Assembly: GCA_950097015.1 (NCBI GenBank)
Contig: CATNEN010000011.1
Location: 5,456,001 to 5,520,000, forward strand
DNA: 64,000 bases
Direction of reading: 5' to 3'
Source of the DNA: Macrostomum hystrix
Lineage: Eukaryota; Animalia; Platyhelminthes
In this document: positions 30,531 to 56,123 of the stretch, piece after piece
Position numbering within the stretch: position 1 is the first letter of the stretch
Layout of the letters: every line of letters begins with the position of its first letter
Translations under genes and position numbers: made by a program
Notes under the pieces: model-generated
Database searches by the model: none
What the model was told of the DNA's origin: nothing
What the model saw: only the letters and a program-made list of their open reading frames with translations

Positions 30531-30791
30531 AAGCGAAAAAGATGCTGAAATGTTGAGTGTAAGTGTTACAGAACTAAGCACTCACACCAGCGAATGTAGT
30601 CAAAGATATTCTCCGCTTCTCATTGGCCAGTTAGTCTTTTCAGCCAATCACAGATAGATGTTTCGACTCCTTAAATTTCCCGCATCCTTCGCATTTTCCT
30701 GGCAGAGCCAAATGCAATAAACTCCTAGCATTGTCTAGTATATCCTACAAATCCCTATTGTCCCTGATCCCTGATCCCTGTAGATCGCTAG

Positions 30792-33700
30792 TCAAAGATG
30801 AACATCACAGTTGGCTACTTCAGTCATCCGCCTTTCTCCGACTTTGTCCACGGCCGGGTTGAAGGCGTGTTCTGGGACCTGCTGCAGCCGGCCCTGAACG
30901 GCTGTCTGGGTCACGACGTCAGCTACCAGATGCGCCGGTTCACCAACGAGGACGCGCTGTTGAAGGGCGGCCTGTTGGAATGCAACATTAGCTTTCCCGT
31001 GACTAAAGGACCTCTGTACTCAGCACTGCCACCTTCAACTTTTATTCCCGTCTTGAGAACTCCAGGTGAGTGTCAGGTGACGGGTGGGGTAGATTAGACA
31101 CAGGTGGGGAAGATTATACACAGGTGGGGAAGATTAGACACAGGTGGGGAAGATTAGAAACAGGTGGGGAAGATTAGACACAGGTGGGGAAGGTTAGACA
31201 CAGGTGGGGAAGATTAGAGACAGGTGGGGAAGATTAGAAACAGGTGGGGAAGATTAGACACAGGTGGGGTAGGTTAGACACAGGTGGGGAAGGTTAGACA
31301 CAGGTGGGGAAGATTAGAGACAGGTGGGGAAGATTAGAAACAGGTGGGGAAAATTAGACACAGGTGGGAAATATTAGAGACAGGTGGGGGAAGATTAGAA
31401 ACAGGTGGGGAATATTAGACACAGGTGGGGAAGATTAGAGACAGGTGGGGAAGACTCAGGGACTGAAGTTGGTCTAAATCGAGTAAAATAACCAAGGCTT
31501 TTAAATGCTTATTGGCTATCTGATTATATTGAAATCAGAAATTTATAAAAATATACAACGCAAATTGAACTCTGCCTAGAGAAATGCAAATCTACACTTC
31601 CAGTCTGGTGTATTTGAAAAGCTAATTTAGATAGAATGAAATTTGAGTAGGGAGTGGGGAAGAGATTTTGACAAAATTGCATCAGTAAACACACGGAATG
31701 CCACAGCTGTCAAGTGTGGTTCATTGGCTTTCCACAGCGCATGAGTAAGCCCAGCTGGTTAAGCACAGAGAGTGCATTCAATTTCACCAATACTTGTCTA
31801 AACAGGTTCTCAGCATTGATGAAATTGGCCACTCAGTTTCTTCAGCTACTGAAGTTCCACTGCTGACTAAAGTTTCTGAGCTTGACTAGTGCCTGAAGCC
31901 CCTTCAATTGACAACGGAGAAGAGACGGAAGAGATGAGACAGTGGAGAATCGACACAGGGGAGTCGACACAGGGGAGTCGACACAGGGGAGAAAATGAGA
32001 CAGGGAAGAGACGATACACGGGAGAGACGAGACAGGGAGAGATGAGACAGGGAAGACGAGACAGGGAGAAAAGTGACAGGGAGAGATGAGACAGGGGAGA
32101 GATGTGACAGGGAGAGATGTGACAGGGAGAGATGAGACAGGGAGAGATGAGACAGGGAAAGATGTGACAGGGAGAGATGAGACAGAGAGATGAGACAGAG
32201 GAGATGAGACAGGGAGAGATGAGACAGGGAGAGATGAGACAGGGAGAGATGAGACAGGGAAGACGAGACAGGGAGAGATGAGACAGGGAAGACGAGACAG
32301 GGAGAAAAGTGACAGGGAGAGATGAGACAGGGGAGAGATGTGACAGGGAGAGATGAGACAGGGGAGAGATGTGATAGGGAGAGATGAGACAGGGGAGAGA
32401 TGTGACAGGGAGAGACGAGACAGGGAAAGACGAGACAGGGAGAGATAAGACAGAGAGAGATGAGACAGGTGAGAGATGAGACAACAGGACAGATGAGACA
32501 GAGAGAGATGAGACAGGGAAAGATGTGACAGGGAGAGATGAGACAGGGAGAGATGAGACAGGGAAAGATGTGACAGGGAGAGATGAGACAGAGAGATGAG
32601 ACAGAGGAGATGAGACAGGGAGAGATGAGACAGGGAGAGATGAGACAGGGAGAGATGAGACAGGAGAGAGATGCGACAGGGAGAGATGAGACAGCGGAGA
32701 GATAAGACAGAGGAGATGAGACAGGGAGAGATGAGACAGGGAAAGATGTGACAGGGAGAGATGAGACAGAGAGATGAGACAGAGGAGATGAGACAGGGAG
32801 AGATGAGACAGGGAGAGATGAGACAGGGAGAGATGAGACAGGAGAGAGATGCGACAGGGAGAGATGAGACAGCGGAGAGATAAGACAGAGGAGATGAGAC
32901 AGGGAGAGATGAGACAGGGAGAGATGAGACAGGGAGAGATGAGACAGGGAGAGATGAGACAGGGAGAGATGAGACAGGGAGAGATGAGACAGGGAGAGAT
33001 GAGACAGGGAGAGATGAGACAGGAGAGAGATGCGACAGGGAGAGATGAGACAGCGGAGAGATAAGACAGAGGAGATGAGACAGGGAGAGATGAGACAGGG
33101 AGAGATGAGACAGGGAGAGATGAGACAGGGAGAGATGAGACAGGGAGAGATGAGACAGGGAGAGATGAGACAGGGAGAGATGAGACAGGGAGAGATGAGA
33201 CAGGAGAGAGATGCGACAGGGAGAGATGAGACAGCGGAGAGATAAGACAGAGGAGATGAGACAGGGAGAGATGAGACAGGGAAAGATGTGACAGGGAGAG
33301 ATGAGACAGAGAGATGAGACAGAGGAGATGAGACAGGGAGAGATGAGACAGGGAGAGATGAGACAGGGAGAGATGAGACAGGAGAGAGATGCGACAGGGA
33401 GAGATGAGACAGCGGAGAGATAAGACAGAGGAGATGAGACAGGGAGAGATGAGACAGGGAGAGATGAGACAGGGAGAGATGAGACAGGGAGAGATGAGAC
33501 AGGGAGAGATGAGACAGGGAGAGATGAGACAGGGAGAGATGAGACAGGGAGAGATGAGACAGGGAGAGATGAGACAGGAGAGAGACGCGACAGGGGAGAG
33601 ATGAGACAGCGGAGAGATGAGACAGCGGAGAGATGAGACAGAGGAGATGACTTACTTGACTTAGCGGCAGGGGGCCTCCATGACGGACGCAGCGAGGAGG

Positions 33701-36700
33701 CGGCTGTTGCCGCCCATATCGCTAACCCCTGGCAGCCAGACGGCCTCCAGCGAGGCGGTGCCGCTCAGGGTGGTCCGTCGGTCGGTTCCGCCGCGCGATC
33801 TTCCTCGCCATAGGCTGGGAAGAAATCAGCTCGGCCGGTATCCCGGAGGAAGTGGGCGAGCTGAGGGATGTTCTCGGGCGAGCAGGCTTCGGCAAGAGTC
33901 GGTGCCGGCCCGAGGTGTTTTAGCCTAGCCCGGGTGAAGGCCGGGCAGTGGCAAATGAAATGCTCGGCGTTTTCACGGCCGGAGCAGCAGAAAGGACACG
34001 TTTCCTCAGGCACGTGGCCTTGGAGGTAGCGGTGTCTGGTGAAGCAGCCATGTCCCGAAAGGGCCATGGTGACTGCTCTCAGGTCTCTGCGGTTTAGCCT
34101 GAGTAAGGCCTTACGCAGGTTACTAGAGGGGGTTGGCACCGCAGCCCTGGACTGGCGACAGTTCAGGGTGCTGGACCACCTCCTCCGGTGCTGGGTCTCC
34201 ATCCAGTGGTTGATGCTGGAGTTGACAACGGAGGCGGGGATCGGGGATTCCGGGCCCGGGCCCATCAGGGAGCTGGCTGCTCCAGCCTTTGCAAGCTCGT
34301 CCGCCATCTCATTCCCTGTGAGCCCGGCGTGCCCAGGGATCCACATCAGCTCCACCTTGTTAGACTGCGCCAAACCGTTTAACTGGTTGTTGCAGTCCAA
34401 GGTGGTTCTGGAGCGAGAGGTGCAGCGACTGAGGGCCTTGAGGGCTGCTTGACTGTCGGAGTGAAAAAAGATCCTCCGACCAGCCAGCTGCCTCTGGCGC
34501 AGCTCAGCCGCACAGAAGCTGATGGCGAGCATTTCGTTTTGGAAAACGCTTGAGCTCTTGCCACAGTGTTGGGAGTGGGTCCAGAGGACCTCGCCACCCG
34601 AGGCGACGCACACCCCGAATCCCGATTTACCGTTCATCAGGGAGCCGTCAGTGTAACAGTGGACTGCGGGGTCATCCCAGCAGTCCTTTACCTCATTACG
34701 AGGGAAGATGCTGACTTTGTACCTGTGGCTCCGGAGTAAAGTGGCCGGGGCCCCGTCCGAAAGGATGGTGAGCCCTCCGCACTCGCCCAGAGTTTTCAGG
34801 CAGAGGTCAGAGTGGGGCAGAAGGGAGCGCTTCGAGAAGGCTCGCGAATTCTGGAAGGATACACCCGCATCAAGGAGACGACGGGTGGACTTTGCCGCTT
34901 CCCCCTTAACAAAAATGTCAATGGGTGTAGCGTTGAGGAAAGCGTTCATGCCTTCAAAGGGAGTGGAGGGTGGGGCGCCCAGCGTCATGCGACAGGCTCT
35001 GCCCTGCACCCTATAAAGCGCCTCCAGGTTTTTCTGGATGCTCATGGCACTGGCCCAGATGAGGCCAGCGTAAGCGACTGACGGTCTAATGATCGCCGTG
35101 TAAATCCACCAAAGGTTTTTGGGGGTTAGCCCCCAAGTGGTGCCCACGGCTCGCCTGACTTGCGCCAGAATGGCCAGGGCCCTCTTGGCCTTTGTGGTAA
35201 TGTGCGGGGTCCAGTTAAGCCTATGGTCTAGCAGGATACCAAGGCACCGGACCTGCTTTTCCATGGCAATATTCTTGCCATAGAGAGTCAGAGGCTCAAT
35301 GGTCCAGCGCAGCCTGCTGGTAAACATAACCGCAACGGTCTTGGACTCAGAGAGTCGGAGCCCGCATTGGTCCGCCCAGCGCACCGCCCTGTTGATAAAG
35401 CCCTGAATGAGGTCCCTGGTGGTTTCCGCCGAGGGGCCCGCGCAGATGGCGGTCACATCGTCGGCATATCCCACCTTCAGGACTGGGTCAGGCCGAGTGC
35501 TTTTTAGCAGCTCATCCATGACGAGATTCCACAGCAGTGGGGTGAGGACGCCACCTTGGGGCCCTCCTTTTAGGACAGGTGCCGAGAGCACCCTGCCTTC
35601 GAGGTGGGCCACCACGTGGCGATTCCGGATCATGTACATGACCCAACGGACGAGGTGGGGGTGAGTGGCCCTGGAAACCAGGGCCTTCTCAAAGGCTTCG
35701 AAAATAACGTTATCGAAGGCCCCCTCAATATCAAGGAAAACAGCCAGGGCAAAACCGCTGCCCAGCACTGCCTTCTCGAGAGTCTCCACAATGCAGTGGA
35801 GGGCGCTCTCCGTGGACCGGCCCGCCCGAAAGGCGTGCTGGTTTGGTGAGAGCGGGGCCCGCCCTAGCTCTACAGTAAGAAGGCGCCAGAGCACCAGTCT
35901 TTCCATGAGCTTGAGGCAGGTGGAAGTCAAGCTTATCGGGCGATAAGACTTGACCGAGCGATAGTCGCCTTTGGCGGGCTTCGGGATGAAGACGACCCGG
36001 GCTTCATGCCACCGCGCTGGTACGTAGCCCAGCACGATGCAGGCCCGTAGAAGTCTGCAGAGGAGATGGAGGAAGCGGCCATTTTTAACCGCTTCATGCA
36101 GAAAGGCCGGATATATACCATCTGGCCCAGGTGCTTTAAAAGGATTGAATGACTTAGCCGCGCGAACGATGCGGTCATTCGTAACGAGTGACTGAGCCAG
36201 GCCCTGACCTCCACGCGAGTGGTCGTCTGGGCCGAAGTGCGCCGGTACACTCGGGAAGAAATGCCCTAGCATAAGCTCGAGCGTTTCCTCCGGGCGCTCA
36301 GTGATCGAGCCGTCCGGCTTTTTAATCGATGAGAGCTTGGAGAAGCGGTCGTTGGTGAGCGCCTTTACCACGCGGGCCGTGGGCCGCGAGCCCTCAAGCC
36401 CTTCGCAGTATTGTCGCCACTTGTCCGCTTTTGCCCTTCTGACCCGGCCCTTAAACTCATGGATGGCGCGAGTATAGGCCTCTTTGTCATCAGGGTCGTG
36501 CGAGGTTTTCAGCTTCCTCTGGAGAGCCTTAGCTCGGCGTCTTAGGACTCCGAGCTCGGGGTTCCACCAGGGGGCCGATTTTTTGCCTTTGTAGGCTTTG
36601 AGCGGGCAAGCCATTTCGTAGGCCTCTGTGATGGCGCCGCCCAGCAGGGCAGCCACTCCATCCAGGTCCTGCGTGGTTTCCATGGCCATGGAGGGGTCAG

Positions 36701-39700
36701 AATCCCGAAGGCCCTCATGCAGCTTTTGGCTGAACGCGGGCCAGTCGGTATTTCTGACATTACGCCTCCAAATAGGCTTTTGCTTCTTATCGGGGGTGCC
36801 GATGTTGAAACGGATGAAACGGTGGTCCGAGAGCGAGCTTTCGGTCTCCCACACCTCCCACCCCAGCACCCTTGGGAGGATGCCGGGTGAGGCCAGGGTG
36901 ACGTCAAGCACCTCAGCCCACCGCCCATTGTCGAAAGTGGGCGTGTTGCCCACATTGCAGAAGTTTAGAGGCGTGCCGCTGACGAAGGCCAGGAGCTCTT
37001 CGCCGCGGTCATTGATTTTTGAGCTACCCCAGTGGGTGTGATGCGAGTTTACATCTCCCGCGAGGAGCAGCTCGAAGTTTCGTGCCCTGGCGAATTCACA
37101 GAGGGCGACGAGGGTATCGCTAACCACGGGGGCGTCGCCTGCCAGGTAGGCGGATGCCACGAGGGTCAACTTGTTAGGCACAATGTGTGCAGATTGGATG
37201 ACGCAGATGTCCCCGTTAGAGAGATCGGGTCTCATCCACGCATTTAAGGCTTTTGCGGCATAGATCAGTGATCTAGGGCGGACAGAGTCTGCCATGCAGA
37301 AGCAGTCATAGCCAGCAGGAATGTTGCTTGGCTTGTTCTTTGATAGCCAGGGCTCCTGCACAAGTACAAGGCCCGGCATCATGCGCTCTGTCGTGCGCAT
37401 CAGATTGACTGATGCTGCCACGCAGTGCTGGGTGTTAACTTGCAGACATGATATTCCGGGGATCATCATGCAGGCAGAGGTCTACTTGGAGGGGGACCCA
37501 GCCAGAAGGCGGTCCTCCTCCTCCGGGTCGATGTCGGTAGCCATGGGCTCCTCCGTGCCCAGGCCCCGAGCCGGAGACGGGAACTCGACGGCGTCAGCCG
37601 CCCAGTCCCCGCCCCCGGCCCCGAGCCCAGGCCCAGAGTCGCCCTCAACTGGAGCCGACACCGCTCCCTGGGCCGTGGGAGGGGCGCTCGAAGGGCCCTG
37701 CTCGATGGAGCTGGGCACCTCTGAGGCCTCCCCCGTAGCCCTTGGTTGCGGCGCCCGCCCCGGTGGGCCACCGCGCATCTCAGCGCGCAGCTGGGCCATC
37801 TTGGCGGTTCGCACCACCTCGGAGGCCCGCTGGAGAAGGCCCCGGCGCTTTGTGACACGCGCGGGGCGACGCTCAGAGCTGCCAGCGATGGCACGCTCTG
37901 GCCTTTTTTTGGCGGGACGACTGGGCCCTGCCCCCAGTCCCAGCCTTGGGGTCCGAGGACCCTTCATTGGCCGGTACGGTGGTGGGCCCGGTCTGACCTC
38001 GGGTTTTATCCGCCTCGAAGGCGAAGATTTTGGTCTTCCACAGACCAATGCAAATGTTGGCGCCATCTGGGTAGCGGCGTGTCCATTGCTCGGACAGGCC
38101 CAGAATGGCGGTGAAACCGGTGCCGTCGGGGCGCAGGATCGTGCGGTGCACGATCAGGCCCGCTGTCGGCAGCTCCCGGTTCATCGCGATGAGGCCCCTG
38201 CGGAGGTCCTCAGCGCTGGTGACGACACTTTTCGCCGGGACGAAGATACGGTGTCGCTTGGTCTTTGGTGGCTCGTTCTCCCGTAGGAACTCGAGGCCAG
38301 CCGCCCAGCTCTGCGTGGGCAGCAACTCGAGGAGCCGCCGCCCCGATTCCGCATCGCCGGGCCAGACGACGAAGCACGATTCCCTGGTAGCGCTTGCGCC
38401 GACCGCCAGGGGCTCGCCCTTCAGTTGAAGTTGCCACAACATAGCATCTATGTTGCGGCAAATGTCGCTGAGCTGTTCGCTGCTCAGCCTTTTCCCGTCT
38501 CTGCCGGTGATGATGACGGCAGGTTGCCTACGTGCGATGGCGGCGTAGGTAGCTTGTGGTCCCGGGCCCTGTCCGGTGGCGTCCCCACCCTCGGGATCTG
38601 CGTCGGCGGTGGGCACAGGGCCCTCCGCCTCCGCTTCTCCTTCGGGCCGGGCAGCCGTCCGGATGGGCGCCGGGCCCTCCTTGGCCCGCGACCCTGGCCT
38701 CGGGGCGTCGTGGGCTCCGCCCCGTGCAGGAGCCTGGGCAGGAGGCACAAGGCCCCCCGCCCCAGCCCCCGCCCTAGGCAGAGCCCCTTCGGCCCCTCTG
38801 GCCTGGGCCTGGTCCTTGGTCAATGGAGCCGACGTGCCGTGGGCCAGCATGCGCCTACGGCGTTTTGCCGCTCCAGAGGTGGTGGAGCGCTTAGCGCCCC
38901 GGTCATCGCGCGAGTTGGGCAGCGCGGCATTTGTGGCGGTCGCGGGGCCAGCTAGCCCGGGCGCCGCAGCGTGTATGGCCTCAGGCACCATGGTGTCCTC
39001 GGCCGGAGCAGTTGAAGGGCTAGAAGCCATTGAAAGCTGCAATGAAGAGAGGGGCTTCCTGTAGACACAGGCAGGAATAACCCGCTCAGCCGCGATCCCA
39101 AAACTGAGCGGGGGCAGCCAAAAAAGACAAGTTACAACCCGGGGTGGGATGCCAGGACCACCGGGAGGAACCGTAAGAGACCAGACTACTCCCTGGCCAA
39201 GCGTCCATCAGCACGGTCAACACTGGGACATTGGAGGGTGCCATTGAGCCGGCGCCGAGGCCTGCGGGCTGGCCGCAAACCCTGTTAAGGTCAAAGGGTG
39301 ACACCTGTCCCTCAGGGCCGTAGCCAGAGGTACCTGATCACGCACAGGTGCACGAAAAATGCGGACAAGCCACATACCCTGTTAAGGTCAAAGGGTGACA
39401 CCTTTCCCTCCAGCCGGGGCTAGAGGTACCCAGTTTGGCCGGAGGCCCTGGATGGGTCATCCAGCGCTGTTGCCCATTCTGTCCGGCTGCCCTAGGGTCA
39501 GCCTTGAACACTCGCGGGACGTGTACCCATGGGTCAGCTGACGGGACAGCGTTGGAGGGATTCCTGCACCCGAAGGTACAGGTCTCCTTCCTGCCAGGCC
39601 TGCTCAAAAAACGGCTGCAGGTGTGAGGCATCGCAGACCAAAGCCCGTGGGCCTGGACTGACTCATACCTCACAGGCACTGTGTCCCGCCGGTGCGAGCG

Positions 39701-42700: not shown

Positions 42701-45700
42701 CGTGGCCCCTGCTGCTCATCATTCTGGTGTCCTGCTCATTCGCTGCCGTGCTGGTCTGGTTCATGGTGAGCATAGACTCATCAACTGCTTGGATAGCTTA
42801 GAGTTTTATTGCCGAAAAACTCGAAATCTCGCTTAAAATCTTTGCCGATATCTCACCTAAAATCTCACCCCTAAGTCTTATCTCACTTAAAATCTCACCT
42901 AATATTATTCTTGAAGTCTTATCCGAAGATCTCATTCGAAAACTCGGCCTAAAGTCTCGCCAAAATCCAAATCACATAAAAAATCTCACCTAAAGTCTCT
43001 CGCAAAATCCCACACGAAATCTCACATAAAACTCTCTCCCTAACTCTCACCCAAAATCTCACCCAAAATCTCACCCAAAATCTCACCCGAAATCTCACCC
43101 GAAATCTCACCCGAATTCTCACCAGAAATCTCATCAGAAATCTCACCTGAAATTTCACCTTAAATCTCACCTAAAGTCTCACTCGAAGTCTCACACTCTC
43201 TCGGTGATATTCCAGGAGCGGCTGAAGAATCCGCAAGAGTTTCCGCGTCCATTTGTGCGCGGCTTCTGGGAGGGCTGGTGGTGGGCCTTCATCACCATGA
43301 CAACCGTTGGGTGAGAATAAACTCGAATACACACTGAGGCGAGGTATATTATCAAATAGCTCGCGCTGCTTGGCTTATGAGTACAGTGTTAATTTATTCT
43401 AAAGTTTGTTGCGCAGAAGTTTTTACTATTCGTCAGAAACTTAACTTGGTCGGCTGCAGTCATTGCAAAATTTACATATTTAAAATTTACGAGTCAGCGA
43501 GTATGACTCACGTTTTTTTAATTTCATTTACTCAAACTCACTGACTTTATGCCGGGGTCCTTTCTCCGAGTACTACCTGTGCTCGCTGAGAAGCTGCGTG
43601 CCTTCCCACAAGCCGAAGCTGCAGGTGGCAGTGCAGCAGGCGGTGGAGGAGATTGGATTCACGAGATGGAGGAGCAGCTGCGACGGGCGAAGCAGCTGTT
43701 TAAGACAATGCGGAGAGACCTGGATTCGAGTGAAGATCGACTGACAGGTCCGATGACAGCTCGGATTGAGACAGCGCTTGTGTGACAGCGCGACATGGAC
43801 GATGTGAGAAGCTACAGGCAGGAGACGTGTCGAAGCTTGTCGAGCTGACGATGTCCATGGAGTTGTCGCTCGATGACTTGAAGGCGGACTTTGATCGGCT
43901 GCAGAAGTCGCTGGAGGAGAGCTTGGCAGCGGAGCAGCAGCTGGAGCGACTGGGGCAGGTGTCGGAGCAGTTCGGCAGAGCGTTGGCTCGTGTGAACGGG
44001 ACCGCTGAGGGCTGGAGAGACGCTGAGGTCAGCGCGACACCCGAGGAGATCGACGACGCAGTGAAGGCGCATGAGTCACGAGAGAAGCTGGATAGCTCTT
44101 GGCTATCACTCAAGACCACCTGTTGTCACCTCGACTCGACTCAACGAGAAAATTTAATATTTTAGCTGTTTCCGAGGGATTTCCGAGGGATTAATTATAA
44201 TAACTGCAATGGCACATCATTTGGTGACACTAGACCCGCAGCCAGCGAGGCAATTCTGCCCATTTCACTGACTCCTGAGCACACACGCACACAGGTGTGT
44301 ACACGTTCTCATCGTCAGGCAGTGTACATTTCACTGTGCCTTGGAGGTTGGCCCTCAATGGCGTAAATTGCACGACAAGCCCCCAAGCCTTCTCTCCGCG
44401 GCTGCGCCCCAAATAAATGTGGCCTCGCCGCGGAATCGAACTTAGGGACCTTGGTGCGAGAGGCAAACGCGTTAACCGCTCTGCCACCGACCGTCTTCCC
44501 AAAGGATTCAATTTTCTTCAATTTCAATAGTTTTCACGTTGACAAAAGTGCATTAATTTTGCAAGGCAATTATAAAGCTGTCAAACCAGTAAAAGTGCAC
44601 TCAGTCACACAAGCGTTCACAGTATCGAGTAAGAGCTTTAAATAATTAATTTGGCCTACTCCTGAATAACAAGGCGAGTCGTTAATACCTAGCTGGTCTG
44701 TCTGTACTAGTACATAATTACTTATCCAGCTAGATCCACTTGACAACAGCAGTAGTTTGAGTTCAGCTCTTTCTCTTGTATCATCGCGTACAATGCCGGA
44801 TATGTCTGGAGAACTCAGCAAGTTTTATAATGAGCAATTTTATCTCTGTTACAATGTCTCTAGACTGTCCCGCTTATTGCTTCCCTGTCTGTGTGACTTG
44901 ACAGCACTGCTGTGACTTCATGTCAAAACATTATTAAACAGTATTAGAGGCAAAATAAAGTGTCAGACGCCAATTGCCGGGCTTACTGAAACCTGTACCT
45001 AGTATATACGTTTAGGACTTGCATTCTGTAGCTTAACTGAATCAGGCACAGAGTGCTGCATAACATTTGTCAGTTTTGATGTAAAAATGAAAAATCCCTT
45101 ACCTTCATCTCCCCTCGAGATCTTCTGATAGGAGTCCCCGACTAAAAATCTGACACAGAGAATCTCACAGAGGAAAATGATCAAACACTAAGAATGCTGC
45201 GCCCAAAAATTCTAGAACAATCCACCGACTGTAATCTCCGAGTCTTAATCACACAGCCGAAAATCCCCACTTATAATCCCCCACGCAAAATCCCCCCTCA
45301 TAATCCTACCACCTATAGTCCCCCGCCCATAATACCCCCACAATAATCCTCCACCCGTAATCTTCCACTCTTATTCCTCGACCATAATCCCCGAAAAATC
45401 CCCAACTCATAATCCCCACCAATAATCCCCGCCCATAATCCCCCGGCAATAATCTTCCACCCATAATCCTCCTCCCATAATCCTCCACCCATAATCCTCC
45501 ACCCATAATCCTCCACCCATAATCCTCAACTTAAAATCCTCCACACATAATCCTCCACCCATAATCCTCCACCCATAATCCTCCACCCATAATCCTCCTC
45601 CCATAATCCTCCATCCATAATCCTCCACCCACAATCCTCCTCCCATAATCCTCCATCCATAATCCTCCATCCATAATCCTCAACTTAAAATCCTCCACAC

Positions 45701-48700
45701 ATAATCCTCCACCCATAATCCTCCACCCATAATCCTACACCCATAATCCTCCATCCATAATCCTCCTCCCATAATCCTCCATCCATAATCCTCCACCCAC
45801 AATCCTCCTCCCATAATCCTCCATCCATAATCCTCCATCCATAATCCTCCTCCCATAATCCTCCTCCCACAATCCTCCATCCATAATCCTCCTCCCATAA
45901 TCCTCCTCCCATAATCCTCCATCCATAATCCTCCACCCATAATCCTCCTCCCATAATCCTCCACCCATAATCCTCCTCCCATAATCCTCCACCCGTAATC
46001 CTCCACTCTTATTCCTCGACCATAATCCCCGAAAAATCCCCAACTCATAATCCCCACCAACAATCCCCGCCCATAATCCCCCTGCAATAATCCTCCTCCC
46101 ATAATCCTCCATCCATAATCCTCCTCCCATAATCCTCCATCCATAATCCTCCTCCCATAATCCTCCATCCATAATCCTGCTCCCATAATCCCTCGACCAA
46201 AATTACCCACCAGAAATTCCCACTCATAATATCCCACCTGACGTCTTACTGCATGAAATTCAAGTATGTTCCGCATGTTCTGCTGGCTGATGTACTTTAA
46301 CTGGGGTTTACCTGCGGTTCTTTTGGCGATGGCAAAATCACTTTTATATTTTTTATTCTGCGCCGAAAAAATAAGGAAGACAAATAACTGTCACTCAATC
46401 TTAACTAGACACGGTGGCTGACGCGTCAACACTAGATCCCATCTAGATTTGATTGTCTCTAACGAAGCCGCTTCCCTTTTCTCCCCACCTCCATGTAAGA
46501 GATTTTACAGCCTTGTTACGCTGGAACACTAACAATACTACTAAAGAGTCCTCTCGTTATGTAAAGCAGTTAGTGCAATCGCTATGTACTTTAGCATATG
46601 TACTTTAGCATATGTACTTTAGCGATCCGCGCCGTTGTAACAAGCCCGCAATGTGCTAAATTAATAACACTGTCTATAATCCAACCCACCAGGAACCTAT
46701 TCTAGTCTCGCCTATGTATCTCACCTCAAGTACTTAATCTCATCTCTAGTCTCTAATCTCACTTTTAGTGCCTAATCTCACTCCCAGTGTCTAATCTCAT
46801 TTCCAGTGCCTAATCTCACTTCTAGTATCTAATCTCATCTCTAGTATCTAATCTCATTTCTAGTATCTAATCTCATCTCTAGTATCTAATCTCATTTCTA
46901 GTATCTAATCTCATCTCTAGTATCTAATCTCATCTCTAGTATCTAATCTCATTTCTAGTATCTAATCTTATTTCTAATATCTAATCTCACTTCTAATCTC
47001 TAATCTCACCTCTAGCCTCTAATCTCATCACTAGTCTCTAATCTCACCTCCGTTGTCAAATCTCACAGCCAAGCACCCACTGCTCCATTGTCAGGTACGG
47101 AGACCGCTCGCCCAAGACCATTGTCGGTCGCCTCTTCGCAATGATATGGATCAGTTTCGGCTTAGTGCTGATCTCCATGTTCACAGCAGTGGTGACTGCA
47201 GCTCTGAGCCAATCAGCTCAGGGACCCGAGGAGGATTACAGATTCTTCCAGACCAATGTGAGACGGCTGCGAGCTGTGGATTATGTTAGATTCTGGGTTA
47301 GGAATATGTTAGATTCTGAGTTAGGAATATGTTAGATTCTGAGTTAGGAATATGTTAGATTCTGAGTTAGGAATATGTTAGATTATGAGTTAGGAATATG
47401 TTAGATTCTGAGTTAGGAATATGTTAGATTCTGGGTTAGGAATATGTTAGATTCTGGGTTAGGAATATGTTAGATTCTGGGTTAGGAATATGTTAGATTC
47501 TGGGTTAGGAATATGTTAGATTCTGGGTTAGGAATATGTTAGATTCTGAGTTAGGAATATGTTAGATTCTGGGTTAGGAATATGTTAGATTCTGGGTTAG
47601 GAATATGTTAGATTCTGGGTTAGGAATATGTTAGATTCTGAGTTAGGAATATGTTAGATTCTGAGTTAGGAATATGTTAGATTCTGAGTTAGGAATATGT
47701 TAGATTATGAGTTAGGAATATGTTAGATTCTGGGTTAGGAATATGTTAGATTCTGGGTTAGGAATATGTTAGATTCTGAGTTAGGAATATGTTAGATTCT
47801 GGGTTAGGAATATGTTAGATTCTGGGTTAGGAATATGTTAGATTCTGGGTTAGGAATATGTTAGATTCTGAGTTAGGAATATGTTAGATTCTGAGTTAGG
47901 AATATGTTAGATTCTGAGTTAGGAATATGTTAGATTATGAGTTAGGAATATGTTAGATTCTGAGTTAGGAATATGTTAGATTCTGAGTTAGGAATATGTT
48001 AGATTCTGAGTTAGGAATATGTTAGATTCTGGGTTAGGAATATGTTAGATTCTGGGTTAGGAATATGTTAGATTCTGAGTTAGGAATATGTTAGATTATG
48101 AGTTAGGAATATGTTAGATTCTGGGTTAGGAATATGTTAGATTCTGGGTTAGGAATATGTTAGATTCTGAGTTAGGAATATGTTAGATTATGAGTTAGGA
48201 ATATGTTAGATTCTGGGTTAGGAATATGTTAGATTCTGAGTTAGGAATATGTTAGATTCTGGGTTAGGAATATGTTAGATTCTGGGTTAGGAATATGTTA
48301 GATTATGAGTTAGGAATATGTTAGATTCTGAGTTAGGAATATGTTAGATTCTGAGTTAGGAATATGTTAGATTATGAGTTAGGAATATGTTAGATTCTGG
48401 GTTAGGAATATGTTAGATTCTGAGTTAGGAATATGTTAGATTCTGGGTTAGGAATATGTTAGATTCTGGGTTAGGAATATGTTAGATTATGAGTTAGGAA
48501 TATGTTAGATTCTGAGTTAGGAATATGTTAGATTATGAGTTAGGAATATGTTAGATTCTGGGTTAGGAATATGTTAGATTCTGGGTTAGGAATATGTTAG
48601 ATTCTGAGTTAGGAATATGTTAGATTCTGAGTTAGGAATATGTTAGATTCTGAGTTAGGAATATGTTAGATTCTGAGTTAGGAATATGTTAGATTATGAG

Positions 48701-51700
48701 TTAGGAATATGTTAGATTCTGGGTTAGGAATATGTTAGATTCTGAGTTAGGAATATGTTAGATTCTGAGTTAGGAATATGTTAGATTCTGGGTTAGGAAT
48801 ATGTTAGATTCTGAGTTAGGAATATGTTAGATTCTGAGTTAGGAATATGTTAGATTCTGGGTTAGGAATATGTTAGATTCTGAGTTAGGAATATGTTAGA
48901 TTCTGGGTTAGGAATATGTTAGATTCTGGGTTAGGAATATGTTAGATTCTGAGTTAGGAATATGTTAGATTCTGAGTTAGGAATATGTTAGATTCTGAGT
49001 TAGGAATATGTTAGATTCTGAGTTAGGAATATGTTAGATTCTGGGTTAGGAATATGTTAGATTCTGAGTTAGGAATATGTTAGATTCTGGGTTAGGAATA
49101 TGTTAGATTCTGAGTTAGGAATATGTTAGATTCTTGGTTAGGAATATGTTAGATTCTGGGTTAGGAATATGTTAGATTCTGGGTTAGGAATATGTTAGAT
49201 TCTGGGTTAGGAATATGTTAGATTCTTGGTTAGGAATATGTTAGATTCTGGGTTAGGAATATGTTAGATTCTGGGTTAGGAATATGTTAGATTCTGGGTT
49301 AGGAATATGTTAGATTCTGAGTTAGGAATATGTTAGATTCTTGGTTAGGAATATGTTAGATTCTGGGTTAGGAATATGTTAGATTCTGGGTTAGGAATAT
49401 GTTCGAAAAAAGAGAGAATAAGATATTCTGATTAGGGAGATTCTGAGTCCGGAGAATGGGAGATTCTGAGTCGGGAAAGTGGGAGATTCTGAGTCGGGAA
49501 AATGGGAGATTCTGAGTTGGGAGAATGGGAGATTCTGAGTTGGGAGAATGGGAGATTCTGAGTTGGGAGAATGGGAGATTCCGATTTAGGAAAATGGGAG
49601 ATTCTGAGTCGGGAAAATGGGAGATTCTGAGTTGGGAGAATGGGAGATTCCGATTTAGGAGAATGGGAGATTCTGAGTTGGGAAAATGGGAGATTCTGAG
49701 TCGGCAGAATGGGAGATTCTGAGTTGGGAGAATGGGAGATTCTGAGTCGGGAGAATGGGAGATTCCGAGTTGGCAGAATGGGAGATTCCGATTTGGGAGA
49801 ATGGGAGATTCCGATTTGGGAGAATGGGAGATTCTGAGTCGGGAGAATGGGAGATTCCGAGTTGGCAGAATGGGAGATTCCGATTTGGGAGAATGGGAGA
49901 TTCCGATTTGGGAGAATGGGAGATTCTGAGTCGGGAGAATGGGAGATTCCGAGTTGGCAGAATGGGAGATTCCGATTTGGGAGAATGGGAGATTCCGATT
50001 TGGGAGAATGGGAGATTCTGAGTCGGGAGAATGGGAGATTCCGAGTTGGCAGAATGGGAGATTCTGAGTTGGGAGAATGGGAGATTCCGATTTGGGAGAA
50101 TGGGAGACTCTGAGTCGGGAGAATGGGAGATTCCGAGTTGGCAGAATGGGAGATTTCGTGTTGGGGGAATGGGAAAATCAAAGTTGGAAGAATGGGAGAT
50201 TTTTAGTTGGGGATATTGTAAAAGTTGGCTTGGGAGAAATGTATATAGGGAGTTGGGGAAATTGCAGATTTTAAGTTATTAAAATGGGAGATTTTGTAAC
50301 AGGGAGAATCGAAAACAAACTTTTCATTAACCTGAACCTTCAGATCACGGTTATCAACGGCTCACATGAGCAGGTGCTGGTGTACGAACTCGGATCAACT
50401 CCGATCGGAATTGCCGACTGGCAGTCGCTGATGCTGCTGGCTCCGGACAATGACACCAACAACGGCACCGACAGCAATCCGGGAAATGTCATGGATGACA
50501 GTGCCAGCAATGACACGTCCTCAGATGAGGCTCCTCATCACGGCGCCCTAATTGAGCACTTCATGTACCTGCACATGCGCCAGGAGCATCCAGGCAGAAT
50601 GCGGAGTCTGAAGCCTCAACTGGTGCTCAAGAGGCCGTCTGTGAGGGGCGTGCATTCAAATCTGCCAGCCAGAGCTTCGATTTGTCTGGCTGAAGCCATG
50701 CTCAAACATCAAATTAGCGTCTACAGTCTGGTGATCGGACATCAGCACGTTGAAGATCGGGTCTGCTGACTGTACATTTTGATGAAAAGAAACTTGAAAT
50801 TTGTGATTCGTGGAAACTTATCGTCATTTTTAACTTTCCAACCCATTTCTCTCTCGTCGCTCCCATTTCTTCCCCTTCTTCCCCGTTTCTTCCCTTTCTT
50901 CCCCATTTCTTCCCCTTCTACCCTATTTCTTCCCTTTATTTCCCATTTCTTCACCTTCTTCCCCATTTCTTCCCTATCTATCCAATTTCTTCCCCCTTTT
51001 CCCCGTTTCTTCCCTTTCTCCTACGTTTCTTCCCTTTCTTCCCATTTCTTCCCCTTCTTCCCCATTTCTTCCCCTTCTTCCCCATTTCTTCCCTTTCTTC
51101 CCCATTTCTTCCCCTTCTTCTCCGTTTCTTCCCCTTCTGCCCCGTTTCTTCCCTTTCTTCCCCATTTCTTCCCCTTCTACCCTATTTCTTCCCTTTATTT
51201 CCCATTTCTTCACCTTCTTCCCCATTTCTTCCCTATCTATCCAATTTCTTCCCCCTTTTCCTCGTTTCTTCCCTTTCTCCTACGTTTCTTCCCTTTCTTC
51301 CCATTTCTTCCCCTTCTTCCCCATTTCTTCCCCTTCTTCCCCATTTCTTCCCCTTCTTCCCAATTTCTTCCCCTTCTTCTCCATTTCTTCCCTTTCTTTC
51401 CCATTTCCTCCCCTTCTTCCCCGTTTCATCTATTTCTTCTCCATTTCTTCCCTTTCTCCTACGTTTCGTCCCTTTCCCATTTATTCCCCTTTTCCTCATA
51501 CATTCCCTTTTATTGCCTATTTATTTTATCTGTTTCTTATTTCTTCCATACGTATAATTTATAATTAATACTAACTGATTACACCTGCCCAATTGAGTCC
51601 GATGTGCAGCCGACACCGCAGCCGCAGCTATTGCGCGGCGCATCTGAAGGCGGCGTACGAGTACAGCTGTTCAGTCCATGGACTGGGGGGACGCCACACC

Positions 51701-53964
51701 CACCGTCAATCACCCCAGCCAATGCTGGCACCCATTTAACAGCTGTTTGAACTGAAGCAATTCGGAGTTAAGTGTCTTGCTAAAGGACGCAAATTGTTTT
51801 AGTAGAGTCGGGAATCGAACCCCCGACCTTCAATCCCTTTACCCCCTTCCATTCCTAAACTAAAAAAATAGTTTGTCCAATTTCTACCATGATATTTGAT
51901 TAACTATCAAATATCACTTTCTGGGCTAGATTTCACTCGATAATGATATAATTTCAATCAAATATCCGCAGGCCTCAGAGCAACCGGTCGCAGTGGAGGT
52001 CGCCCAGTCGCTGTTTTCAACAAGCAACAAGCACCTAGGCATTGTGGCAGCCGTGTTTGGCATTGTGTTTCTCGCATTGCTGGTCTGGGAAAAGCTTTAT
52101 TGGCAGCCAAGAAATCCTGAGTATAAATGTGAGCCATTAAAATGCTGGAGTATCTCTTAATTCACTTTCATTTCTACCTAATTAGCGGCAATAAAATTCG
52201 AGCAGATGCAAAAAAATCTGGGACAAAAACTGCCCAGAAAAAGGAATATTTATTTATTTTTGCCACTAATAAAGATTGCATCACGGATTGAATGAATAAC
52301 AGAATTATTCCCAAAGGAATCCTGATCTCGAGCGGATGCTCTAAAATTTTTTTTCTAGAGAATTTTAAAAAGTTACCCAGGAAAAGCTAGGAACGCAGTT
52401 TCCTTAGCCAGGCATCTTTTCGCATTGCGTTGCTTATCATAAACTCAGATTCTCCCAAATGTCATTTTCTAATCCCTATAGGATACTATCACTGCTCACC
52501 AGAGCTTTTACCTAACTTTCTAGGTTGAAACTTTCCTAGAAAAATAATACTCTTTCCCATTATCCACACACGCGATCTCCCATTCAGAAATCCTAACTCG
52601 GAATCTCCCATTGTCCTAAATCAGAATTTCCCATTCTCACAACTCAGAATCTCCCATTCTCCCAACTCGGAATCTCCCATTATCCCAATTCGGATTCCCC
52701 CCATTCTTCCATGTGCCCCATTTGATTATCCCATTCTCCTAGCTTGGATTATCCCATTTACCCAACTTCGAATGTACAATATTCCAAACTCAGATTCTCC
52801 TATTCTCCCATTCTCCCAACTCGAATTCTCCCGTTTCTAACAACTCAAAATATCCCATTCTCCCAACTCAAATTCTACCGATTTTAACAACACGGAATCT
52901 TCCATTCTCCCAACTCGAATTCTCCTATTCTCCCAACTAAAAATATCCCCATTCTCCCAACTCGGAATCTCCCATTCTCCCAACTCGGAATCTCGCATTC
53001 TCCCCAACTTGGAATCTCCCATTCTCCCAACTCGGAATCTCGCATTCTCCCCAACTTGGAATCTCCCATTCTCCCAACTCGGAATCTTGCATTCTCCCCA
53101 ACTTGGAATCTCCCATTCTCCCAATTCAGATTCCCCCATTCTTCCATGTGCCCCATTTGATTATCCCATTCTCCTAGCTTGGATTATCCCATTTACCCAA
53201 CTTCGAATCTACAATATTCCAAACTCAGATTCTCCTATTCTCCCATTCTCCCAACTCGAATTCTCCCGTTTCTAACAACTCAAAATATCCCATTCTCCAA
53301 ACTCAAATTCTCCCGATTTTAACAACACGGAATCTTCCATTCTCCCAACTCGAATTCTCCTATTCTCCCAACTTGGAATCGCCCATTCTCCCCAACTTGG
53401 AATCTCCCAGTCTCCCAAACTGGGAATCTCCCATTCTCCCAACTCGAAATATCCCCATTCTACCAACTCGGAATCTCCTATTCTCCCAAATCGGAATCTC
53501 CAATTCTCCTAACTCGGAATCTCCCATTCTCCCAACTCGGAATCTCCCATTCTCCCACTCGGAATCTCCCATTCTCCCAACTCGGAATCTCCCATTCTCC
53601 CAACTCGGAATCTCCCATTCCCCCAAATCGGAATCTCCCATTCCCCCAAATCGGAATCTCCCATTCTCCCAACTCGGAATCTCCCATTCTCCCACTCGGA
53701 ATCTCCCACACGCCATTGCCAGTCGTGGAGATGAACTGGAAGTACGAGAGGCAGAAGAAGGAAGCCGAGTTCGGTCGCGAGCTGGACTTCAAAGCGTTTT
53801 ACCGGCACTCGCGGCGGGGCGAGGCGCCGAAAGCGAGACCGGAAAGTCGGCAGCGGCAGTTGCGAAATCGTGAGTCTTTGTCAGACAAAGACAACAATGA
53901 CATTGCGGCTTCGCCAGCAGCGAATGATGAAAGCAATCGATTCAATTGCACAAGCAATGCTTGA
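30792..53964 (+). CDS. Ionotropic glutamate receptor-like ligand-gated channel with K+ selectivity filter (GluR0/AvGluR1-like); 7 exons, ~495 aa, 5' end uncertain
   Basis: Phase-consistent exons 30792-31065 (S1: [12 protein letters not shown]...[10 protein letters not shown]), 42626-42765 (M1: [22 protein letters not shown]), 43216-43310 ([10 protein letters not shown]...[15 protein letters not shown]), 47095-47257 ([37 protein letters not shown]), 50344-50760 (S2), 51972-52128 (M4: [18 protein letters not shown]), 53723-53964. Total 1488 nt, no internal stop. Confidence 0.85.
31090..31453. repeat. 20-bp minisatellite (ACAGGTGGGGAAGATTAGAC)
   Basis: Tandem periodicity. Confidence 0.93.
31915..33650. 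repeat. 15-16-bp GAGATGAGACAGGG satellite with higher-order duplications, interrupted by the LINE
   Basis: Tandem periodicity; a short remnant continues at 39700-39730. Confidence 0.95.
33765..37469 (-). CDS. LINE ORF2: AP endonuclease + reverse transcriptase + RNase H + CCHC zinc knuckle (1234 aa)
   Basis: APE motifs LVQEPW, GDVNSHH, SDH. RT motifs [39 protein letters not shown]. RNase H YTDGS and WIPGHAG...[13 protein letters not shown]...HFICHC. Confidence 0.96.
37482..39030 (-). CDS. LINE ORF1 (DUF4780-like domain), apparently split by a +1 frameshift
   Basis: ATG 39030 to stop 37873 (KRHRIFVP...[16 protein letters not shown]...[11 protein letters not shown]). An overlapping frame continues to TAG 37482-37484 with an acidic tail ([14 protein letters not shown]). 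Confidence 0.7.
40222..41262. repeat. 18-bp minisatellite (GAGACAGTAGAGAGAGAT)
   Basis: Tandem periodicity. Confidence 0.95.
41840..42596. repeat. 20/18-bp minisatellite (GTCTAACAGGTTGTGATTGT)
   Basis: Tandem periodicity; ends ~30 nt before the exon-2 acceptor. Confidence 0.94.
42855..43195. repeat. 12-bp minisatellite (AAATCTCACCCA)
   Basis: Degenerate tandem periodicity. Confidence 0.85.
43560..44150 (+). pseudogene. Frameshifted spectrin-repeat/coiled-coil gene fragment nested in channel intron 3
   Basis: Helical peptides in at least three frames, including [22 protein letters not shown] (spectrin-repeat-like W...HE pattern). No usable splice sites. Confidence 0.4.
44185..44492 (-). mobile_element. 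SINE family A, full-length
   Basis: Same head, core and tail as the 25970-26290 copy. Confidence 0.82.
45290..46195. repeat. 14-bp minisatellite (ATAATCCTCCACCC)
   Basis: Tandem periodicity. Confidence 0.93.
46735..47048. repeat. 19-bp minisatellite (AGTATCTAATCTCATCTCT)
   Basis: Tandem periodicity. Confidence 0.9.
47282..49402. repeat. 23-bp minisatellite (TTAGATTCTGAGTTAGGAATATG)
   Basis: 2.1-kb highly homogeneous array. Confidence 0.97.
49430..50225. repeat. 23-bp minisatellite (GAGTTGGGAGAATGGGAGATTCC)
   Basis: Tandem periodicity. Confidence 0.94.
50845..51480. repeat. Pyrimidine-rich TTCTTCCCC satellite (a similar CT-rich tract lies at 54170-54530)
   Basis: Low-complexity tandem units. 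Confidence 0.88.
51574..51835 (-). mobile_element. SINE family B, full-length
   Basis: Reverse complement of the 4742 copy: CTGATTACACCTGCCCAATTG...CAGTCCATGGAC...GTTAAGTGTCTTGCT...GGGAATCGAACCC. Confidence 0.8.
52590..53710. repeat. 23-bp minisatellite (GGAATCTCCCATTCTCCCAACTC), inverted copy of the 49430 family
   Basis: Exact reverse-complement unit. Confidence 0.93.
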
Positions 53965-55019
53965 TTAGTTTTAACATTGAATTACAGATTTCAAGGACAT
54001 GATTTGATGCGAGTTGAATTGTACTTTAAACTGGTATGACAGATTTATGACGCAACGCTTTTTCTAACAAGCGCATACAATCACACTGTAGAAATATAAA
54101 TTGGCGGTCTTTTATTTTCAAATTTCTTTTTTACTCTTACTTACTGAAATTGTATCATTTATGTCGTAATGTCTCCCTTCACATCACTTCCTCCATTTTT
54201 CTGCTCTCACCATTTTCACCCCTCTCTCTGCCGTATCTCTATCTCTACAATGGTCTCTCCCTCCCACTTCTCCCCTCTCTCTCCCACTTCTCCTCTCTCT
54301 CTCCCCCACTTCTCCCCTCTCTCTTCCACTTCTCCCCTCTCTCTCCCACTTCTCCCCTCTCTCTCCCACTTCTCCTCTCTCTCTCCCACTTCTCCCCTCT
54401 CTCTTTTCCATTTCACCCCTCACTCTCTTCCACTTCTCCCCTCACTCTCTTCAATTTCTCCTCTTTTTCTGTTATTTATAATCCAAATGGTTCCCACTTC
54501 TCCCAACTCTCTGTCCCATTTTTATTCTCTCCCTGCCAATTATCCCATGTCCTCCACTTTTCCCTTTTCCACTGTTTCCTGACTGTTTATATCTATTTTG
54601 ACGTGTCAATAAAAAAATCCTTATCGAATTTTCGCCTTGAATACCAAGGTTCTTACACACCTGCGACACTTTATCGGCAATCACTTAAATTAGATATATA
54701 TTGCATTACACACTTTATCTATCAAATATTTCTAATAAGCTGTTCATTATAAATAAACATAGTTATTTGTTGTAAATCGATTAAAGTGCATAAATGTGTG
54801 GAAACTATGACATAATGTTTAATTACGCACAATAAAATGCAAATTTTAATTTTAATAGCCTTACATCATAACTAAACACAATGCTCCAATAATAACAATT
54901 TTTCGGTGCATCATTTTGTCCAGTCATTTTGATAAATCTGTGTGATCAATGATTTTTGAGATTTGGACTATTCGAGGTGGGAAAATAGAGGATTCTTATT
55001 TGGGATAATGCGAGATTCC

Positions 55020-55330
55020 AAATTGGGAGCATGGGAGATTCCGAGTTGGGAGCATGGGAGATTCCGAGTTGGGAGAATGGGAGATTCCGAGTTGGGAGAA
55101 TGGGAGACTCTGAGTTGGCAGAATGGGAGATTCCGAGTTGGGAGAATGGGAGATTCCGAGTTGGGAGAATGGGAGACTCTGAGTTGGGAAAATGGGAGAC
55201 TCTGAGTTGGGAAAATGGGAGACTCTGAGTTGGGAGAATGGGAGATTTTGAGTTGGGAGAATGGGAAGATTCCGATTTGGGAGAATGGGAGATTTCGAGT
55301 TGGGAGAATGGGAGACTCTGAATTGGGAGA
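55020..55330. repeat. 23-bp minisatellite (GAGTTGGGAGAATGGGAGATTCC), third array
   Basis: Same unit and orientation as 49430-50225. Confidence 0.92.
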
Positions 55331-56123
55331 AATCGATTTTTAGTAAAGGCTTTTTCGCCTCTTAGATTTCCAGCTATCGATCATAATTTTTTAGCGGAAC
55401 ACAACAGCAAAAATATGACAGTTTTTTGTTCGCTTGTTTTTGTTCGCAAGTTAAATTTTCTGTACTCGTTCGTAGAATTATTACGGCAAACACACTCACG
55501 TATTTGAATTATTTATTTACCCATCTACTAAGTTACTGGTCTGAGCATATAATGCATTTCTTATTTGAACAGTTGTCATTTTTTTTGTCAGAATTTTATT
55601 CGCCAATTCAGATTCAAATTTCTCTAGTGTGCATTTTTTCTCGAAAAGTTAACTCGGGCCTTACAAACTGGCTTGGTTTGCACTGAAATTCTAGAACTTA
55701 TTCAAAGCAGAAGAATAATTTGTTTAGTATAAAACTAACTCAAATAATTTCAATGGAAAGTTAAAAGTTTTTAATAGAGAAAAACTGTTTATTATTATTT
55801 TTTTAAACTTTCTTTAATAAAAGATTTGAGAACATTAGAGAACTACTGTAGGGCTTAGCACTGGAAGAGTTTTTGTTAACAAAAGCAAAAAAATTGTCAA
55901 TTACTGAAGAGGCGCAGTATAAGCTACTGTAAGTAGAATTCTCAGTAAATTGTGGAAGCTGTTTCAGATTGTGATTATAACAAAAATGTTCATCTAGCCC
56001 TTAGGGCAAGATTTTCAACACTCGAAAAAACTATTTTTAGCGACCAAAAAATATCAGGAAGACAATGTTAAGACATCGAGGTCTGCAAAAACTGTCTCGG
56101 AAATCCCATCGAGCTTTTTTGGG

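Follow-up and report, generated by a model that had tools for sequence, protein, structure and literature searches.

A seven-exon flatworm gene for a predicted glutamate-receptor-type channel subunit with a potassium-channel filter, and its animal family

The window analysed here is a stretch of 64,000 nucleotides (nt) from the flatworm Macrostomum hystrix (contig CATNEN010000011.1 of assembly GCA_950097015.1, positions 5,456,001 to 5,520,000 of the forward strand). Between positions 30792 and 53964 its plus strand holds seven exons, which join to a gene for a predicted channel subunit. There is little doubt that this flatworm gene is intact and that it belongs to the animal protein family described below. 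With a fair degree of confidence, it can further be read as the gene for a subunit from an ancient animal branch of the ionotropic glutamate receptor (iGluR) superfamily, which has kept a pore of the type found in the prokaryotic receptor GluR0.

Such a subunit would have an extracellular, two-lobed ligand-binding domain (LBD), whose halves (S1 and S2) are interrupted by a first membrane helix (M1), a re-entrant pore loop with a K+ signature, and the helix M3; S2 would then be followed by a further membrane helix (M4) and a cytoplasmic tail. The mechanism proposed is modelled on that of GluR0 and the iGluRs. The channel would be a tetramer whose K+ pore is inverted, with the filter facing the cytoplasm; the clamshell, on closing around a ligand outside the cell, would pull on M3 and so open the gate, and the resulting efflux of K+ would hyperpolarise or shunt the cell. 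The chances that the receptor is both ligand-gated and K+-selective appear to us evenly balanced. A more far-reaching proposal, which is offered tentatively and falls somewhat short of an even chance, is that a separate and very old receptor class in cnidarians, hemichordates and flatworms, with a GluR0-type K+-selective pore, a clamshell and M4 but no amino-terminal domain, is a surviving intermediate between bacterial GluR0 and the modern iGluRs, that it carries fast ligand-gated inhibitory K+ currents, and that in flatworms its pocket has been rebuilt for a ligand other than a standard amino acid.

In the accepted account of the origin of iGluRs, the first step was the fusion of a binding protein to a K+ channel in inverted orientation, and later steps brought the gain of M4 and of an amino-terminal domain and the loss of K+ selectivity; this account rests on GluR0 and on the rotifer receptor AvGluR1 (PMC12332018). 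The family described here would be a third state of that series (M4 gained, K+ filter kept, no amino-terminal domain), present in three animal phyla. If its members are indeed ligand-gated and K+-selective, they would constitute a new type of fast inhibitory animal receptor, and would offer a model from nature on which ligand-gated K+ silencers could be engineered.

Gene structure, pore and orthologues

The borders of the exons were set by hand and the exons were joined by script, which gave one open frame of 1488 nt uninterrupted by a stop; counted from the ATG at 30798, the predicted product has 493 residues. Every acceptor is AG and every donor is GT. Of the six donors, all but that of exon 5 read GTGAG; the exception (CGG/GTCTGC, the slash marking the border) is the weakest site. 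Thus, the proposal of a first-pass annotation, that seven exons scattered over 23 kb splice in frame, was borne out by AG and GT borders throughout and by a single stop-free frame. The same annotation described the exons as small, which is so for all of them except exon 5 (417 nt).

The order of domains in the joined frame is S1, M1, pore, M3, S2, M4 and tail, as had been proposed, and the same order is seen in all aligned relatives. Exon 1 (30792–31065), which contains the ATG and ends at the donor GTGAGT, encodes the S1 half of the LBD. Exon 2 (42626–42765) encodes the segment preceding M1 and M1 itself (residues 115–136), and exon 3 (43216–43310) a cytoplasmic loop, the pore helix and the first half of the filter (pore helix and filter together, residues 154–171). 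Exon 4 (47095–47257) begins after a CAG acceptor and encodes the second half of the filter, a DRSPKT..GR motif, M3 (residues 181–205) and the start of S2. Most of S2 is encoded by exon 5 (50344–50760), including the motifs INGSHE and GALIEHF, a conserved Cys and a variable loop rich in N, D and S. Exon 6 (51972–52128) encodes the linker preceding M4 and M4 itself (residues 383–400), and exon 7 (53723–53964) the cytoplasmic tail and the stop codon. The joint between exons 6 and 7 is in phase 1 and creates a Phe codon.

The filter, TMTTVGYGD, is interrupted within the codon for its first Gly (GG/G) by the intron between 43310 and 47095: exon 3 ends in GG, followed by GTGAGA, and exon 4 opens with the remaining base, followed by the codons for YGD. 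Because this Gly codon is split by an intron, a search of the window with a degenerate pattern for a contiguous TTVGYGD gave no match. The intact K+ filter TTVGYGD and the accompanying M4 that had been claimed from the first inspection are therefore both present, the filter as two halves that meet at 43310/47095 and M4 in exon 6.

Pfam was run exon by exon for the window, and structure models were made on relatives (the orthologue from Macrostomum lignano and P0009, a coral protein). Exon 4 alone matches Ion_trans_2 with 34.3 bits (cut-off 22.5) and Lig_chan (PF00060) with 25.9 bits (gathering score 30.8); in two relatives the Lig_chan match lies above the cut-off of 30.8 (32.2 bits in M. lignano P0001 and 34.6 bits in P0009). 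Exon 3 has a weak match to Ion_trans_2, and its best match in the PDB is the pore of the K+ channel Lmo2059. The signature T-x-x-T-x-G-Y-G-D is present in the window together with the preceding pore helix and the aromatic cuff, and the filter residues T250, T251, G253, Y254, G255 and D256 are invariant in 23 family members. When the family profile was compared with PDB sequences, it matched only K+ channels: KvLm, Shaker, Kv1.2 and KvAP at 1e-12 to 1e-13, and KcsA at about 1e-9. Exon 4 alone aligns equally weakly to the inner helices of K+ channels and to the M3 stretch of AMPA and NMDA receptors, and the SYTANLAAF gating motif of M3 is represented in the window by three of its nine residues (T, A and A). 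Judged by sequence, the filter is therefore like that of a K+ channel, and the motif following the filter and M3 are like those of an iGluR, as the family profile matches K+ channels and exon 4 aligns to both groups.

Support for the joined exons comes from the congener M. lignano. When exon 1 was used in an exhaustive HMMER search, no more than eight proteins matched, and the best of them were from this species. The M. lignano proteins P0001, P0005 and P0003 align to each exon in the same order (tblastn onto the window), and exon-wise identity to M. lignano is, from exon 1 to exon 7, 44 (S1), 58, 88 (pore), 62, 41 (S2), 39 and 46%. For P0001 in particular, exon 1 aligns with 44% identity (E 1e-19), exon 3 is 88% identical, and exon 5 aligns with E 1e-23. 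The residues around the joint of exons 1 and 2 (…LRTPGAVWL…) are present in P0003 as …VLRTPGAVWL…, and the joints of exons 2 and 3, 3 and 4, and 6 and 7 are reproduced in P0001. P0003 appears degenerate, in that YGG replaces YGD. Two extra segments of P0001, one after S1 and one after M3, were considered and set aside: they are absent from P0003, from corals, from hemichordates and from the joints in the window, and probably represent retained intron.

The animal family, its ectodomain and rival readings

The family was searched with the M. lignano protein and then with a coral match, which yielded more than 80 cnidarian clusters; they represent stony corals, sea anemones and octocorals as well as one jellyfish (Rhopilema) and one hydrozoan (Hydractinia). 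These cnidarian proteins have 470–580 residues, are named “uncharacterized” or “Potassium channel domain-containing”, and all have Lig_chan, Ion_trans and Ion_trans_2; model cnidarians, Nematostella among them, have dozens of paralogs. When the search was restricted to the pore region of the flatworm protein, proteins of two hemichordates (Saccoglossus kowalevskii and Glandiceps talaboti) were also recovered, with Lig_chan and Ion_trans_2. The closest relatives found beyond the family are GluR0-type proteins from bacteria, 350–390 residues long, with SBP_bac_3, Lig_chan-Glu_bd, Lig_chan and Ion_trans_2; most classical iGluRs lay outside the reach of these searches, so that this ranking is no test against them. 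In the alignment of bacterial and animal proteins, the two groups hardly differ between the end of M1 and that of M3 (ER..NP.EF…G.W.GFWWA.VTMTTVGYGD..P.(S/T)..GR…W…(S).FTA..T..L). Past S2, the animal proteins alone continue, with a conserved segment preceding M4, M4 and a tail. In the window, M4 is an 18-residue hydrophobic helix, without counterpart in the bacterial relatives; the equivalent helix has a predicted local distance difference test (pLDDT) score of 85–94 in the M. lignano model, and is likewise modelled with confidence in the coral protein, at residues 434–472.

A maximum-likelihood tree of 40 rows was rooted with bacteria. The animal family forms one clade versus the bacterial GluR0-type proteins (support 100/100). 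Within it, the window protein and that of M. lignano are joined with 100/100, the flatworm pair groups weakly with the hemichordates (82/51), and that group stands beside the main cnidarian clade (96/93). This shape of the tree, an animal clade with cnidarian and bilaterian members, fits vertical descent from an ancestor of cnidarians and bilaterians with many losses, and does not fit recent transfer, insofar as sequences can tell. The first-pass annotation had regarded the gene as an animal one, and the introns, the M. lignano orthologues and the animal clade agree with this. Its description of a poorly characterised GluR0-like lineage also stands, as bacterial GluR0-type proteins are the nearest relatives outside the family and no paper on the family was found, although the scope is wider and takes in Cnidaria and Hemichordata. 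The lineage is not rotifer-like, being without an amino-terminal domain, widespread in Cnidaria and present in Hemichordata.

Two groups within the family were noted in passing. Members of a cnidarian subfamily (P0064, P0131–P0140 and P0146) have N-terminal Ig (I-set) and CUB domains, some with FN3, in the position where classical iGluRs have the amino-terminal domain. P0133, P0141, P0144 and P0145 (Logan/ENA) form a deep, long-branched clade of the family (100/100) that has kept the filter (TMTTVGYGDK); as their taxon is unassigned, the range of the family may be wider than three phyla.

An AlphaFold2 model of the coral protein P0009, made from an alignment of 23 sequences, has a mean pLDDT of 76.7, with 85–94 for S1 and S2. 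In Foldseek, its top matches are NMDA and AMPA receptor chains, either full-length or made up of the LBD and transmembrane domain (E 1e-13, about 450 columns). In VIA-align, the top match is the LBD of Nostoc GluR0 (2pyy; Z 21.4, root-mean-square deviation 2.1, 202 of 212 residues), followed by bacterial amino-acid-binding proteins (GlnBP and others, Z about 20) and the Synechocystis GluR0 core (1ii5, Z 20.4). Since the coral model ranks the ligand-binding core of GluR0 first, the ectodomain of the family is, on the model of this coral member, a true clamshell, and the subunit is shaped as an iGluR LBD and transmembrane domain with M4.

An amino-terminal domain before S1 was not found: in the flatworm and hemichordate proteins S1 begins 2–10 residues after the start or signal peptide, and cnidarian members have only about 50 extra N-terminal residues, or Ig/CUB domains. 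Of the eight N-X-S/T sequons, all but one fall within S1 or S2, and M1 and M4 are each followed by positively charged residues. As the pore of the family is inserted between the halves of an extracellular binding domain, it should sit inverted.

Several observations weigh against reading the flatworm gene as one for a GluR0-type receptor subunit. In the model of the M. lignano protein, M1, P, M3 and M4 fold well and the LBD has a pLDDT below 50, and the only Foldseek matches of this model are K+ pores (KcsA and MloK1). Pfam found no family in the exons for S1, S2, M4 and the tail, and no binding-protein domain in S1 and S2. The arginine of the S1 Thr..Arg motif is without an aligned counterpart in the window, in M. 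lignano and in the hemichordates. The tree compares the family with bacterial GluR0-type proteins alone, and the stem of the flatworm pair is long, at 1.72 changes per site. Between 24000 and 30790, a scan for an upstream signal-peptide exon (ATG, hydrophobic stretch and phase-0 donor) found none. Among the assembled contigs of three sequencing runs (X3, X4 and X5) none reaches the acceptor of exon 4, covers exons 2 and 3 or crosses the joint 43310/47095.

As the LBD of the flatworm orthologue was modelled with low confidence, the homology of S1 and S2 to cnidarian profiles was tested. Against a hidden Markov model (HMM) of cnidarian S1, the window S1 scored 21.9 bits (best of 500 shuffles 4.1), and against a cnidarian S2 HMM the window S2–M4 scored 16.9 bits (best shuffle 6.7). 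With hhalign, flatworm versus cnidarian gave 93% for S1 (E 3e-7) and 92% for S2 (E 6e-7), bilaterian versus cnidarian S2 gave 99%, and cnidarian versus bacterial S2 gave 97%, with swapped controls at or below 2%. Flatworm S2 versus bacterial S2 directly was not significant (0.6%), so that this link holds only via the cnidarian profile. The clamshell of the flatworm protein is thus backed by profile homology. It had been suggested from the outset that S1 and S2 should model as a clamshell and that the joined protein should match Ion_trans_2 and periplasmic-binding-protein domains: the former was seen for coral P0009 but not for M. lignano, and of the latter the Ion_trans_2 match was found (in exon 4) and the binding-protein match was not.

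Of the ligand-contact positions, those in S2 have been kept: the Gly-Ser of INGSHE and the acidic Glu of GALIEHF (D in most cnidarians). A conserved Cys of S2 has been kept as well. Many cnidarian members have an R or K a few positions away from the S1 arginine of the bacterial proteins. The missing S1 arginine lowers the case for an amino-acid receptor, but not that for the architecture. Because this arginine is missing, although the S2 Gly-Ser and the acidic residue are retained, the comparison of sequences suggests that the flatworm ligand is probably bound in a different way from a standard alpha-amino acid.

With regard to the 5′ end, Met stands directly before N-(I/L)-T-V in all three flatworm sequences, and an AG at 30790–91, which is possibly a trans-splice site, stands 6 nt ahead of the ATG at 30798. 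For these two reasons, translation may start at 30798, perhaps after trans-splicing, with M1 as a signal anchor. The cnidarian and hemichordate relatives begin with hydrophobic, signal-like N-termini. A weak “KC…” similarity at 30701–30740 was considered as an upstream exon and dropped, being in the wrong phase.

None of the runs on record as RNA contains the locus. In X3, X4 and X5, which are small runs from one organism, contigs of depth 2–4 lie on exon 4 and stop exactly at 47257, continuing past it for 33–211 letters that do not fit the genome, whereas the DNA run X2 reads into the intron. Because the contigs of three runs leave the genome exactly at this position and the DNA run does not, the donor of exon 4 is in use, and the gene is transcribed and spliced there. 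RNA confirmation of the splice joints, which had been called for at the start, is thus available for the donor of exon 4 but not for the joint 43310/47095, which no contig covers; the joint within the filter therefore rests on the cross-species protein match.

Some of these observations would also suit a subunit with a working K+ or cation pore, whose flatworm ectodomain no longer binds a small ligand and which acts as a leak or constitutive channel, is gated otherwise (by a protein partner, pH or ions), or serves only as a partner in heteromers with paralogs. The unalignable S1 arginine, the low confidence of the M. lignano LBD, the long flatworm stem branch and the variable low-complexity loop in S2 could all be understood in this way. 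However, S1 and S2 still follow the cnidarian clamshell in collinear order and resemble it significantly, the Gly-Ser, the acidic position and the conserved Cys of S2 have been kept, and the open frame is intact over about 270 codons of the ectodomain. We consider such a loss of the ligand unlikely, though worth serious thought.

The filter itself raises another alternative, namely a ligand-gated but non-selective cation channel. A GYG signature alone is no proof of K+ selectivity, as HCN channels keep GYG and are weakly selective, and the family adds M4 and an iGluR-like motif after the filter (DRSPKT..GR). Nevertheless, pore helix and filter (F/WWWA-x-x-TMTTVGYGD) agree over their whole length with those of Kv channels, with matches at 1e-12, the six filter residues are invariant across the 23 members, and GluR0, whose pore is of the same type, is described as selective for K+ (PMC12332018; bioRxiv 10.1101/2021.01.27.428399). 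Non-selectivity thus seems decidedly improbable.

A decaying or silent pseudogene with seemingly intact exons is a very improbable explanation. The introns are swollen with satellites and a transposable element, the contig depth is only 2–4, the donor of exon 5 is weak, and the close M. lignano relative P0003 appears degenerate at its filter. In contrast, the 493 codons in seven exons are free of stops and frameshifts, spliced contigs occur in three runs, and the pore is 88% identical to that of M. lignano while the loops differ.

A recent gene transfer from bacteria, or a contaminant, for which only the bacterial GluR0-type identity of the nearest non-animal relatives speaks, has next to no probability and is refuted in practice by the six spliceosomal introns and the tree (a monophyletic animal clade with members in three phyla), as well as by an M4 and tail that bacteria lack and a position between animal genes with synteny conserved in M. 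lignano.

Introns and neighbouring genes

Each intron has its own minisatellite array, with periods of 12–23 bases and up to 115 copies, and several arrays end 20–50 bases from a splice site. The arrays lie at 31083–31454, 31917–33650, 40219–41254, 41838–42602, 42980–43194, 45262–46191, 46718–47050, 47278–50211, 50862–51457 and 52591–53708. A 23-base unit at 47278–49747 is related to units at 49435–50211, 52591–53708 and 55000–55331 (GGGAGATTC…GAGTT), in both orientations.

Intron 1 contains an apparently intact long interspersed nuclear element (LINE) on the minus strand (33765–39042). Its open reading frame (ORF) of 1234 amino acids has an Exo_endo_phos endonuclease, a reverse transcriptase and an RNase H, and its upstream ORF of 389 amino acids has no Pfam match; the GC content of the element is about 0.60, versus about 0.45 in its surroundings. 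It is because the introns are full of minisatellites abutting the exons, and because of the LINE in intron 1, that no long ORF reveals the channel gene. The original explanation, that short exons buried in satellites hide the gene from the list of ORFs, is therefore right as to the satellites, but exon 5 is not short.

Two further elements lie between exons 3 and 4. At 43549–44165 of the plus strand, in intron 3, there are two coiled-coil-like ORFs (78 and 127 amino acids) of no clear Pfam family. This region is covered by abundant contigs from X3–X5 (depth 50–370), which are 90–99% alike and have small indels; it appears to belong to a repeated family that is expressed, and not to be an exon of the channel gene. 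At 44100–44580 there is an interspersed repeat of very high copy number, whose summed contig depth is as high as 2.2 million for the DNA run and runs to thousands for X3–X5, with many variant joints. This is probably an element resembling a short interspersed nuclear element.

The channel gene is flanked by animal genes. Downstream, and convergent with it, a CaMK-like protein kinase gene lies on the minus strand (56925–58300). The C-terminal parts of P0001 and P0005 also match 56940–58012, which is the reverse strand of this kinase gene (Pkinase). These two proteins had suggested an extension of the channel gene to 58012, which was rejected, as the sequence is antisense to the kinase gene. From this match it follows that the channel gene ends at 53964, and that its gene order with the kinase is conserved in M. 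lignano. The UniProt models of M. lignano (A0A1I8J4Y3 and A0A1I8GUP9), which combine an SGF29 Tudor domain, the channel and an antisense translation of the kinase, are chimeric, because their C-terminal part is the antisense strand of the kinase gene.

Comparison with known systems

A paper on this animal family with a K+ filter was not found, either among recent papers on the evolution of iGluRs or in literature searches on GluR0 in metazoans, including cnidarians and Nematostella; this result is provisional, as most subscription journals lay outside the search. The main survey of metazoan iGluRs required at least four residues of SYTANLAAF and dropped other sequences (PMC6307864), so that the family, being below this threshold, falls outside that survey. 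In a 2025 review, GluR0 and AvGluR1 are the only iGluR-type proteins named with a K+ signature (PMC12332018).

The prokaryotic glutamate-gated K+ channel GluR0, known from Synechocystis and from Nostoc (Chen et al. 1999, cited in PMC12332018), is described without M4 and without an amino-terminal domain (bioRxiv 10.1101/2021.01.27.428399). The family resembles it in the order S1–M1–P–M3–S2, in the absence of an amino-terminal domain, in the full T-x-V-G-Y-G-D filter within a nearly identical pore block, and in the clamshell of its coral member, to which the GluR0 LBD is nearest (Z 21.4). In contrast to GluR0, the animal family has M4, a cytoplasmic tail, spliceosomal introns, an animal distribution and a separate clade (100/100), and its flatworm members have no alignable S1 arginine. 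Furthermore, in bacterial proteins of the GluR0 type S1 and S2 are recognised by Pfam as SBP_bac_3 and Lig_chan-Glu_bd, whereas those of the family are not.

The rotifer receptor AvGluR1 is, as the review describes it, likewise an animal subunit of the iGluR type with M4 and a K+ signature in the pore loop (PMC12332018). Compared by description only, it differs from the family in having the full eukaryotic iGluR architecture, including the amino-terminal domain that the family lacks (same source).

The tetrameric K+ channels (Kv/Shaker, KvAP, KcsA and KvLm) share the pore helix and filter of the family, and KcsA and MloK1 are the channels matched by the confidently folded part of the M. lignano model. 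However, the pore of the family is inserted between the halves of a binding domain, there is no voltage sensor, and M4 is additional.

With the classical iGluRs (AMPA, kainate, delta, NMDA, epsilon and lambda) the family shares the fold of the LBD and transmembrane domain, including M4 (GluN and GluA chains at E 1e-13), a block after the filter and in M3 that aligns to GluA4, and a Lig_chan match above the cut-off in P0001 and P0009. Unlike them, it has no amino-terminal domain, retains three of the nine residues of SYTANLAAF, and has a K+ filter in place of the Q/R/N site.

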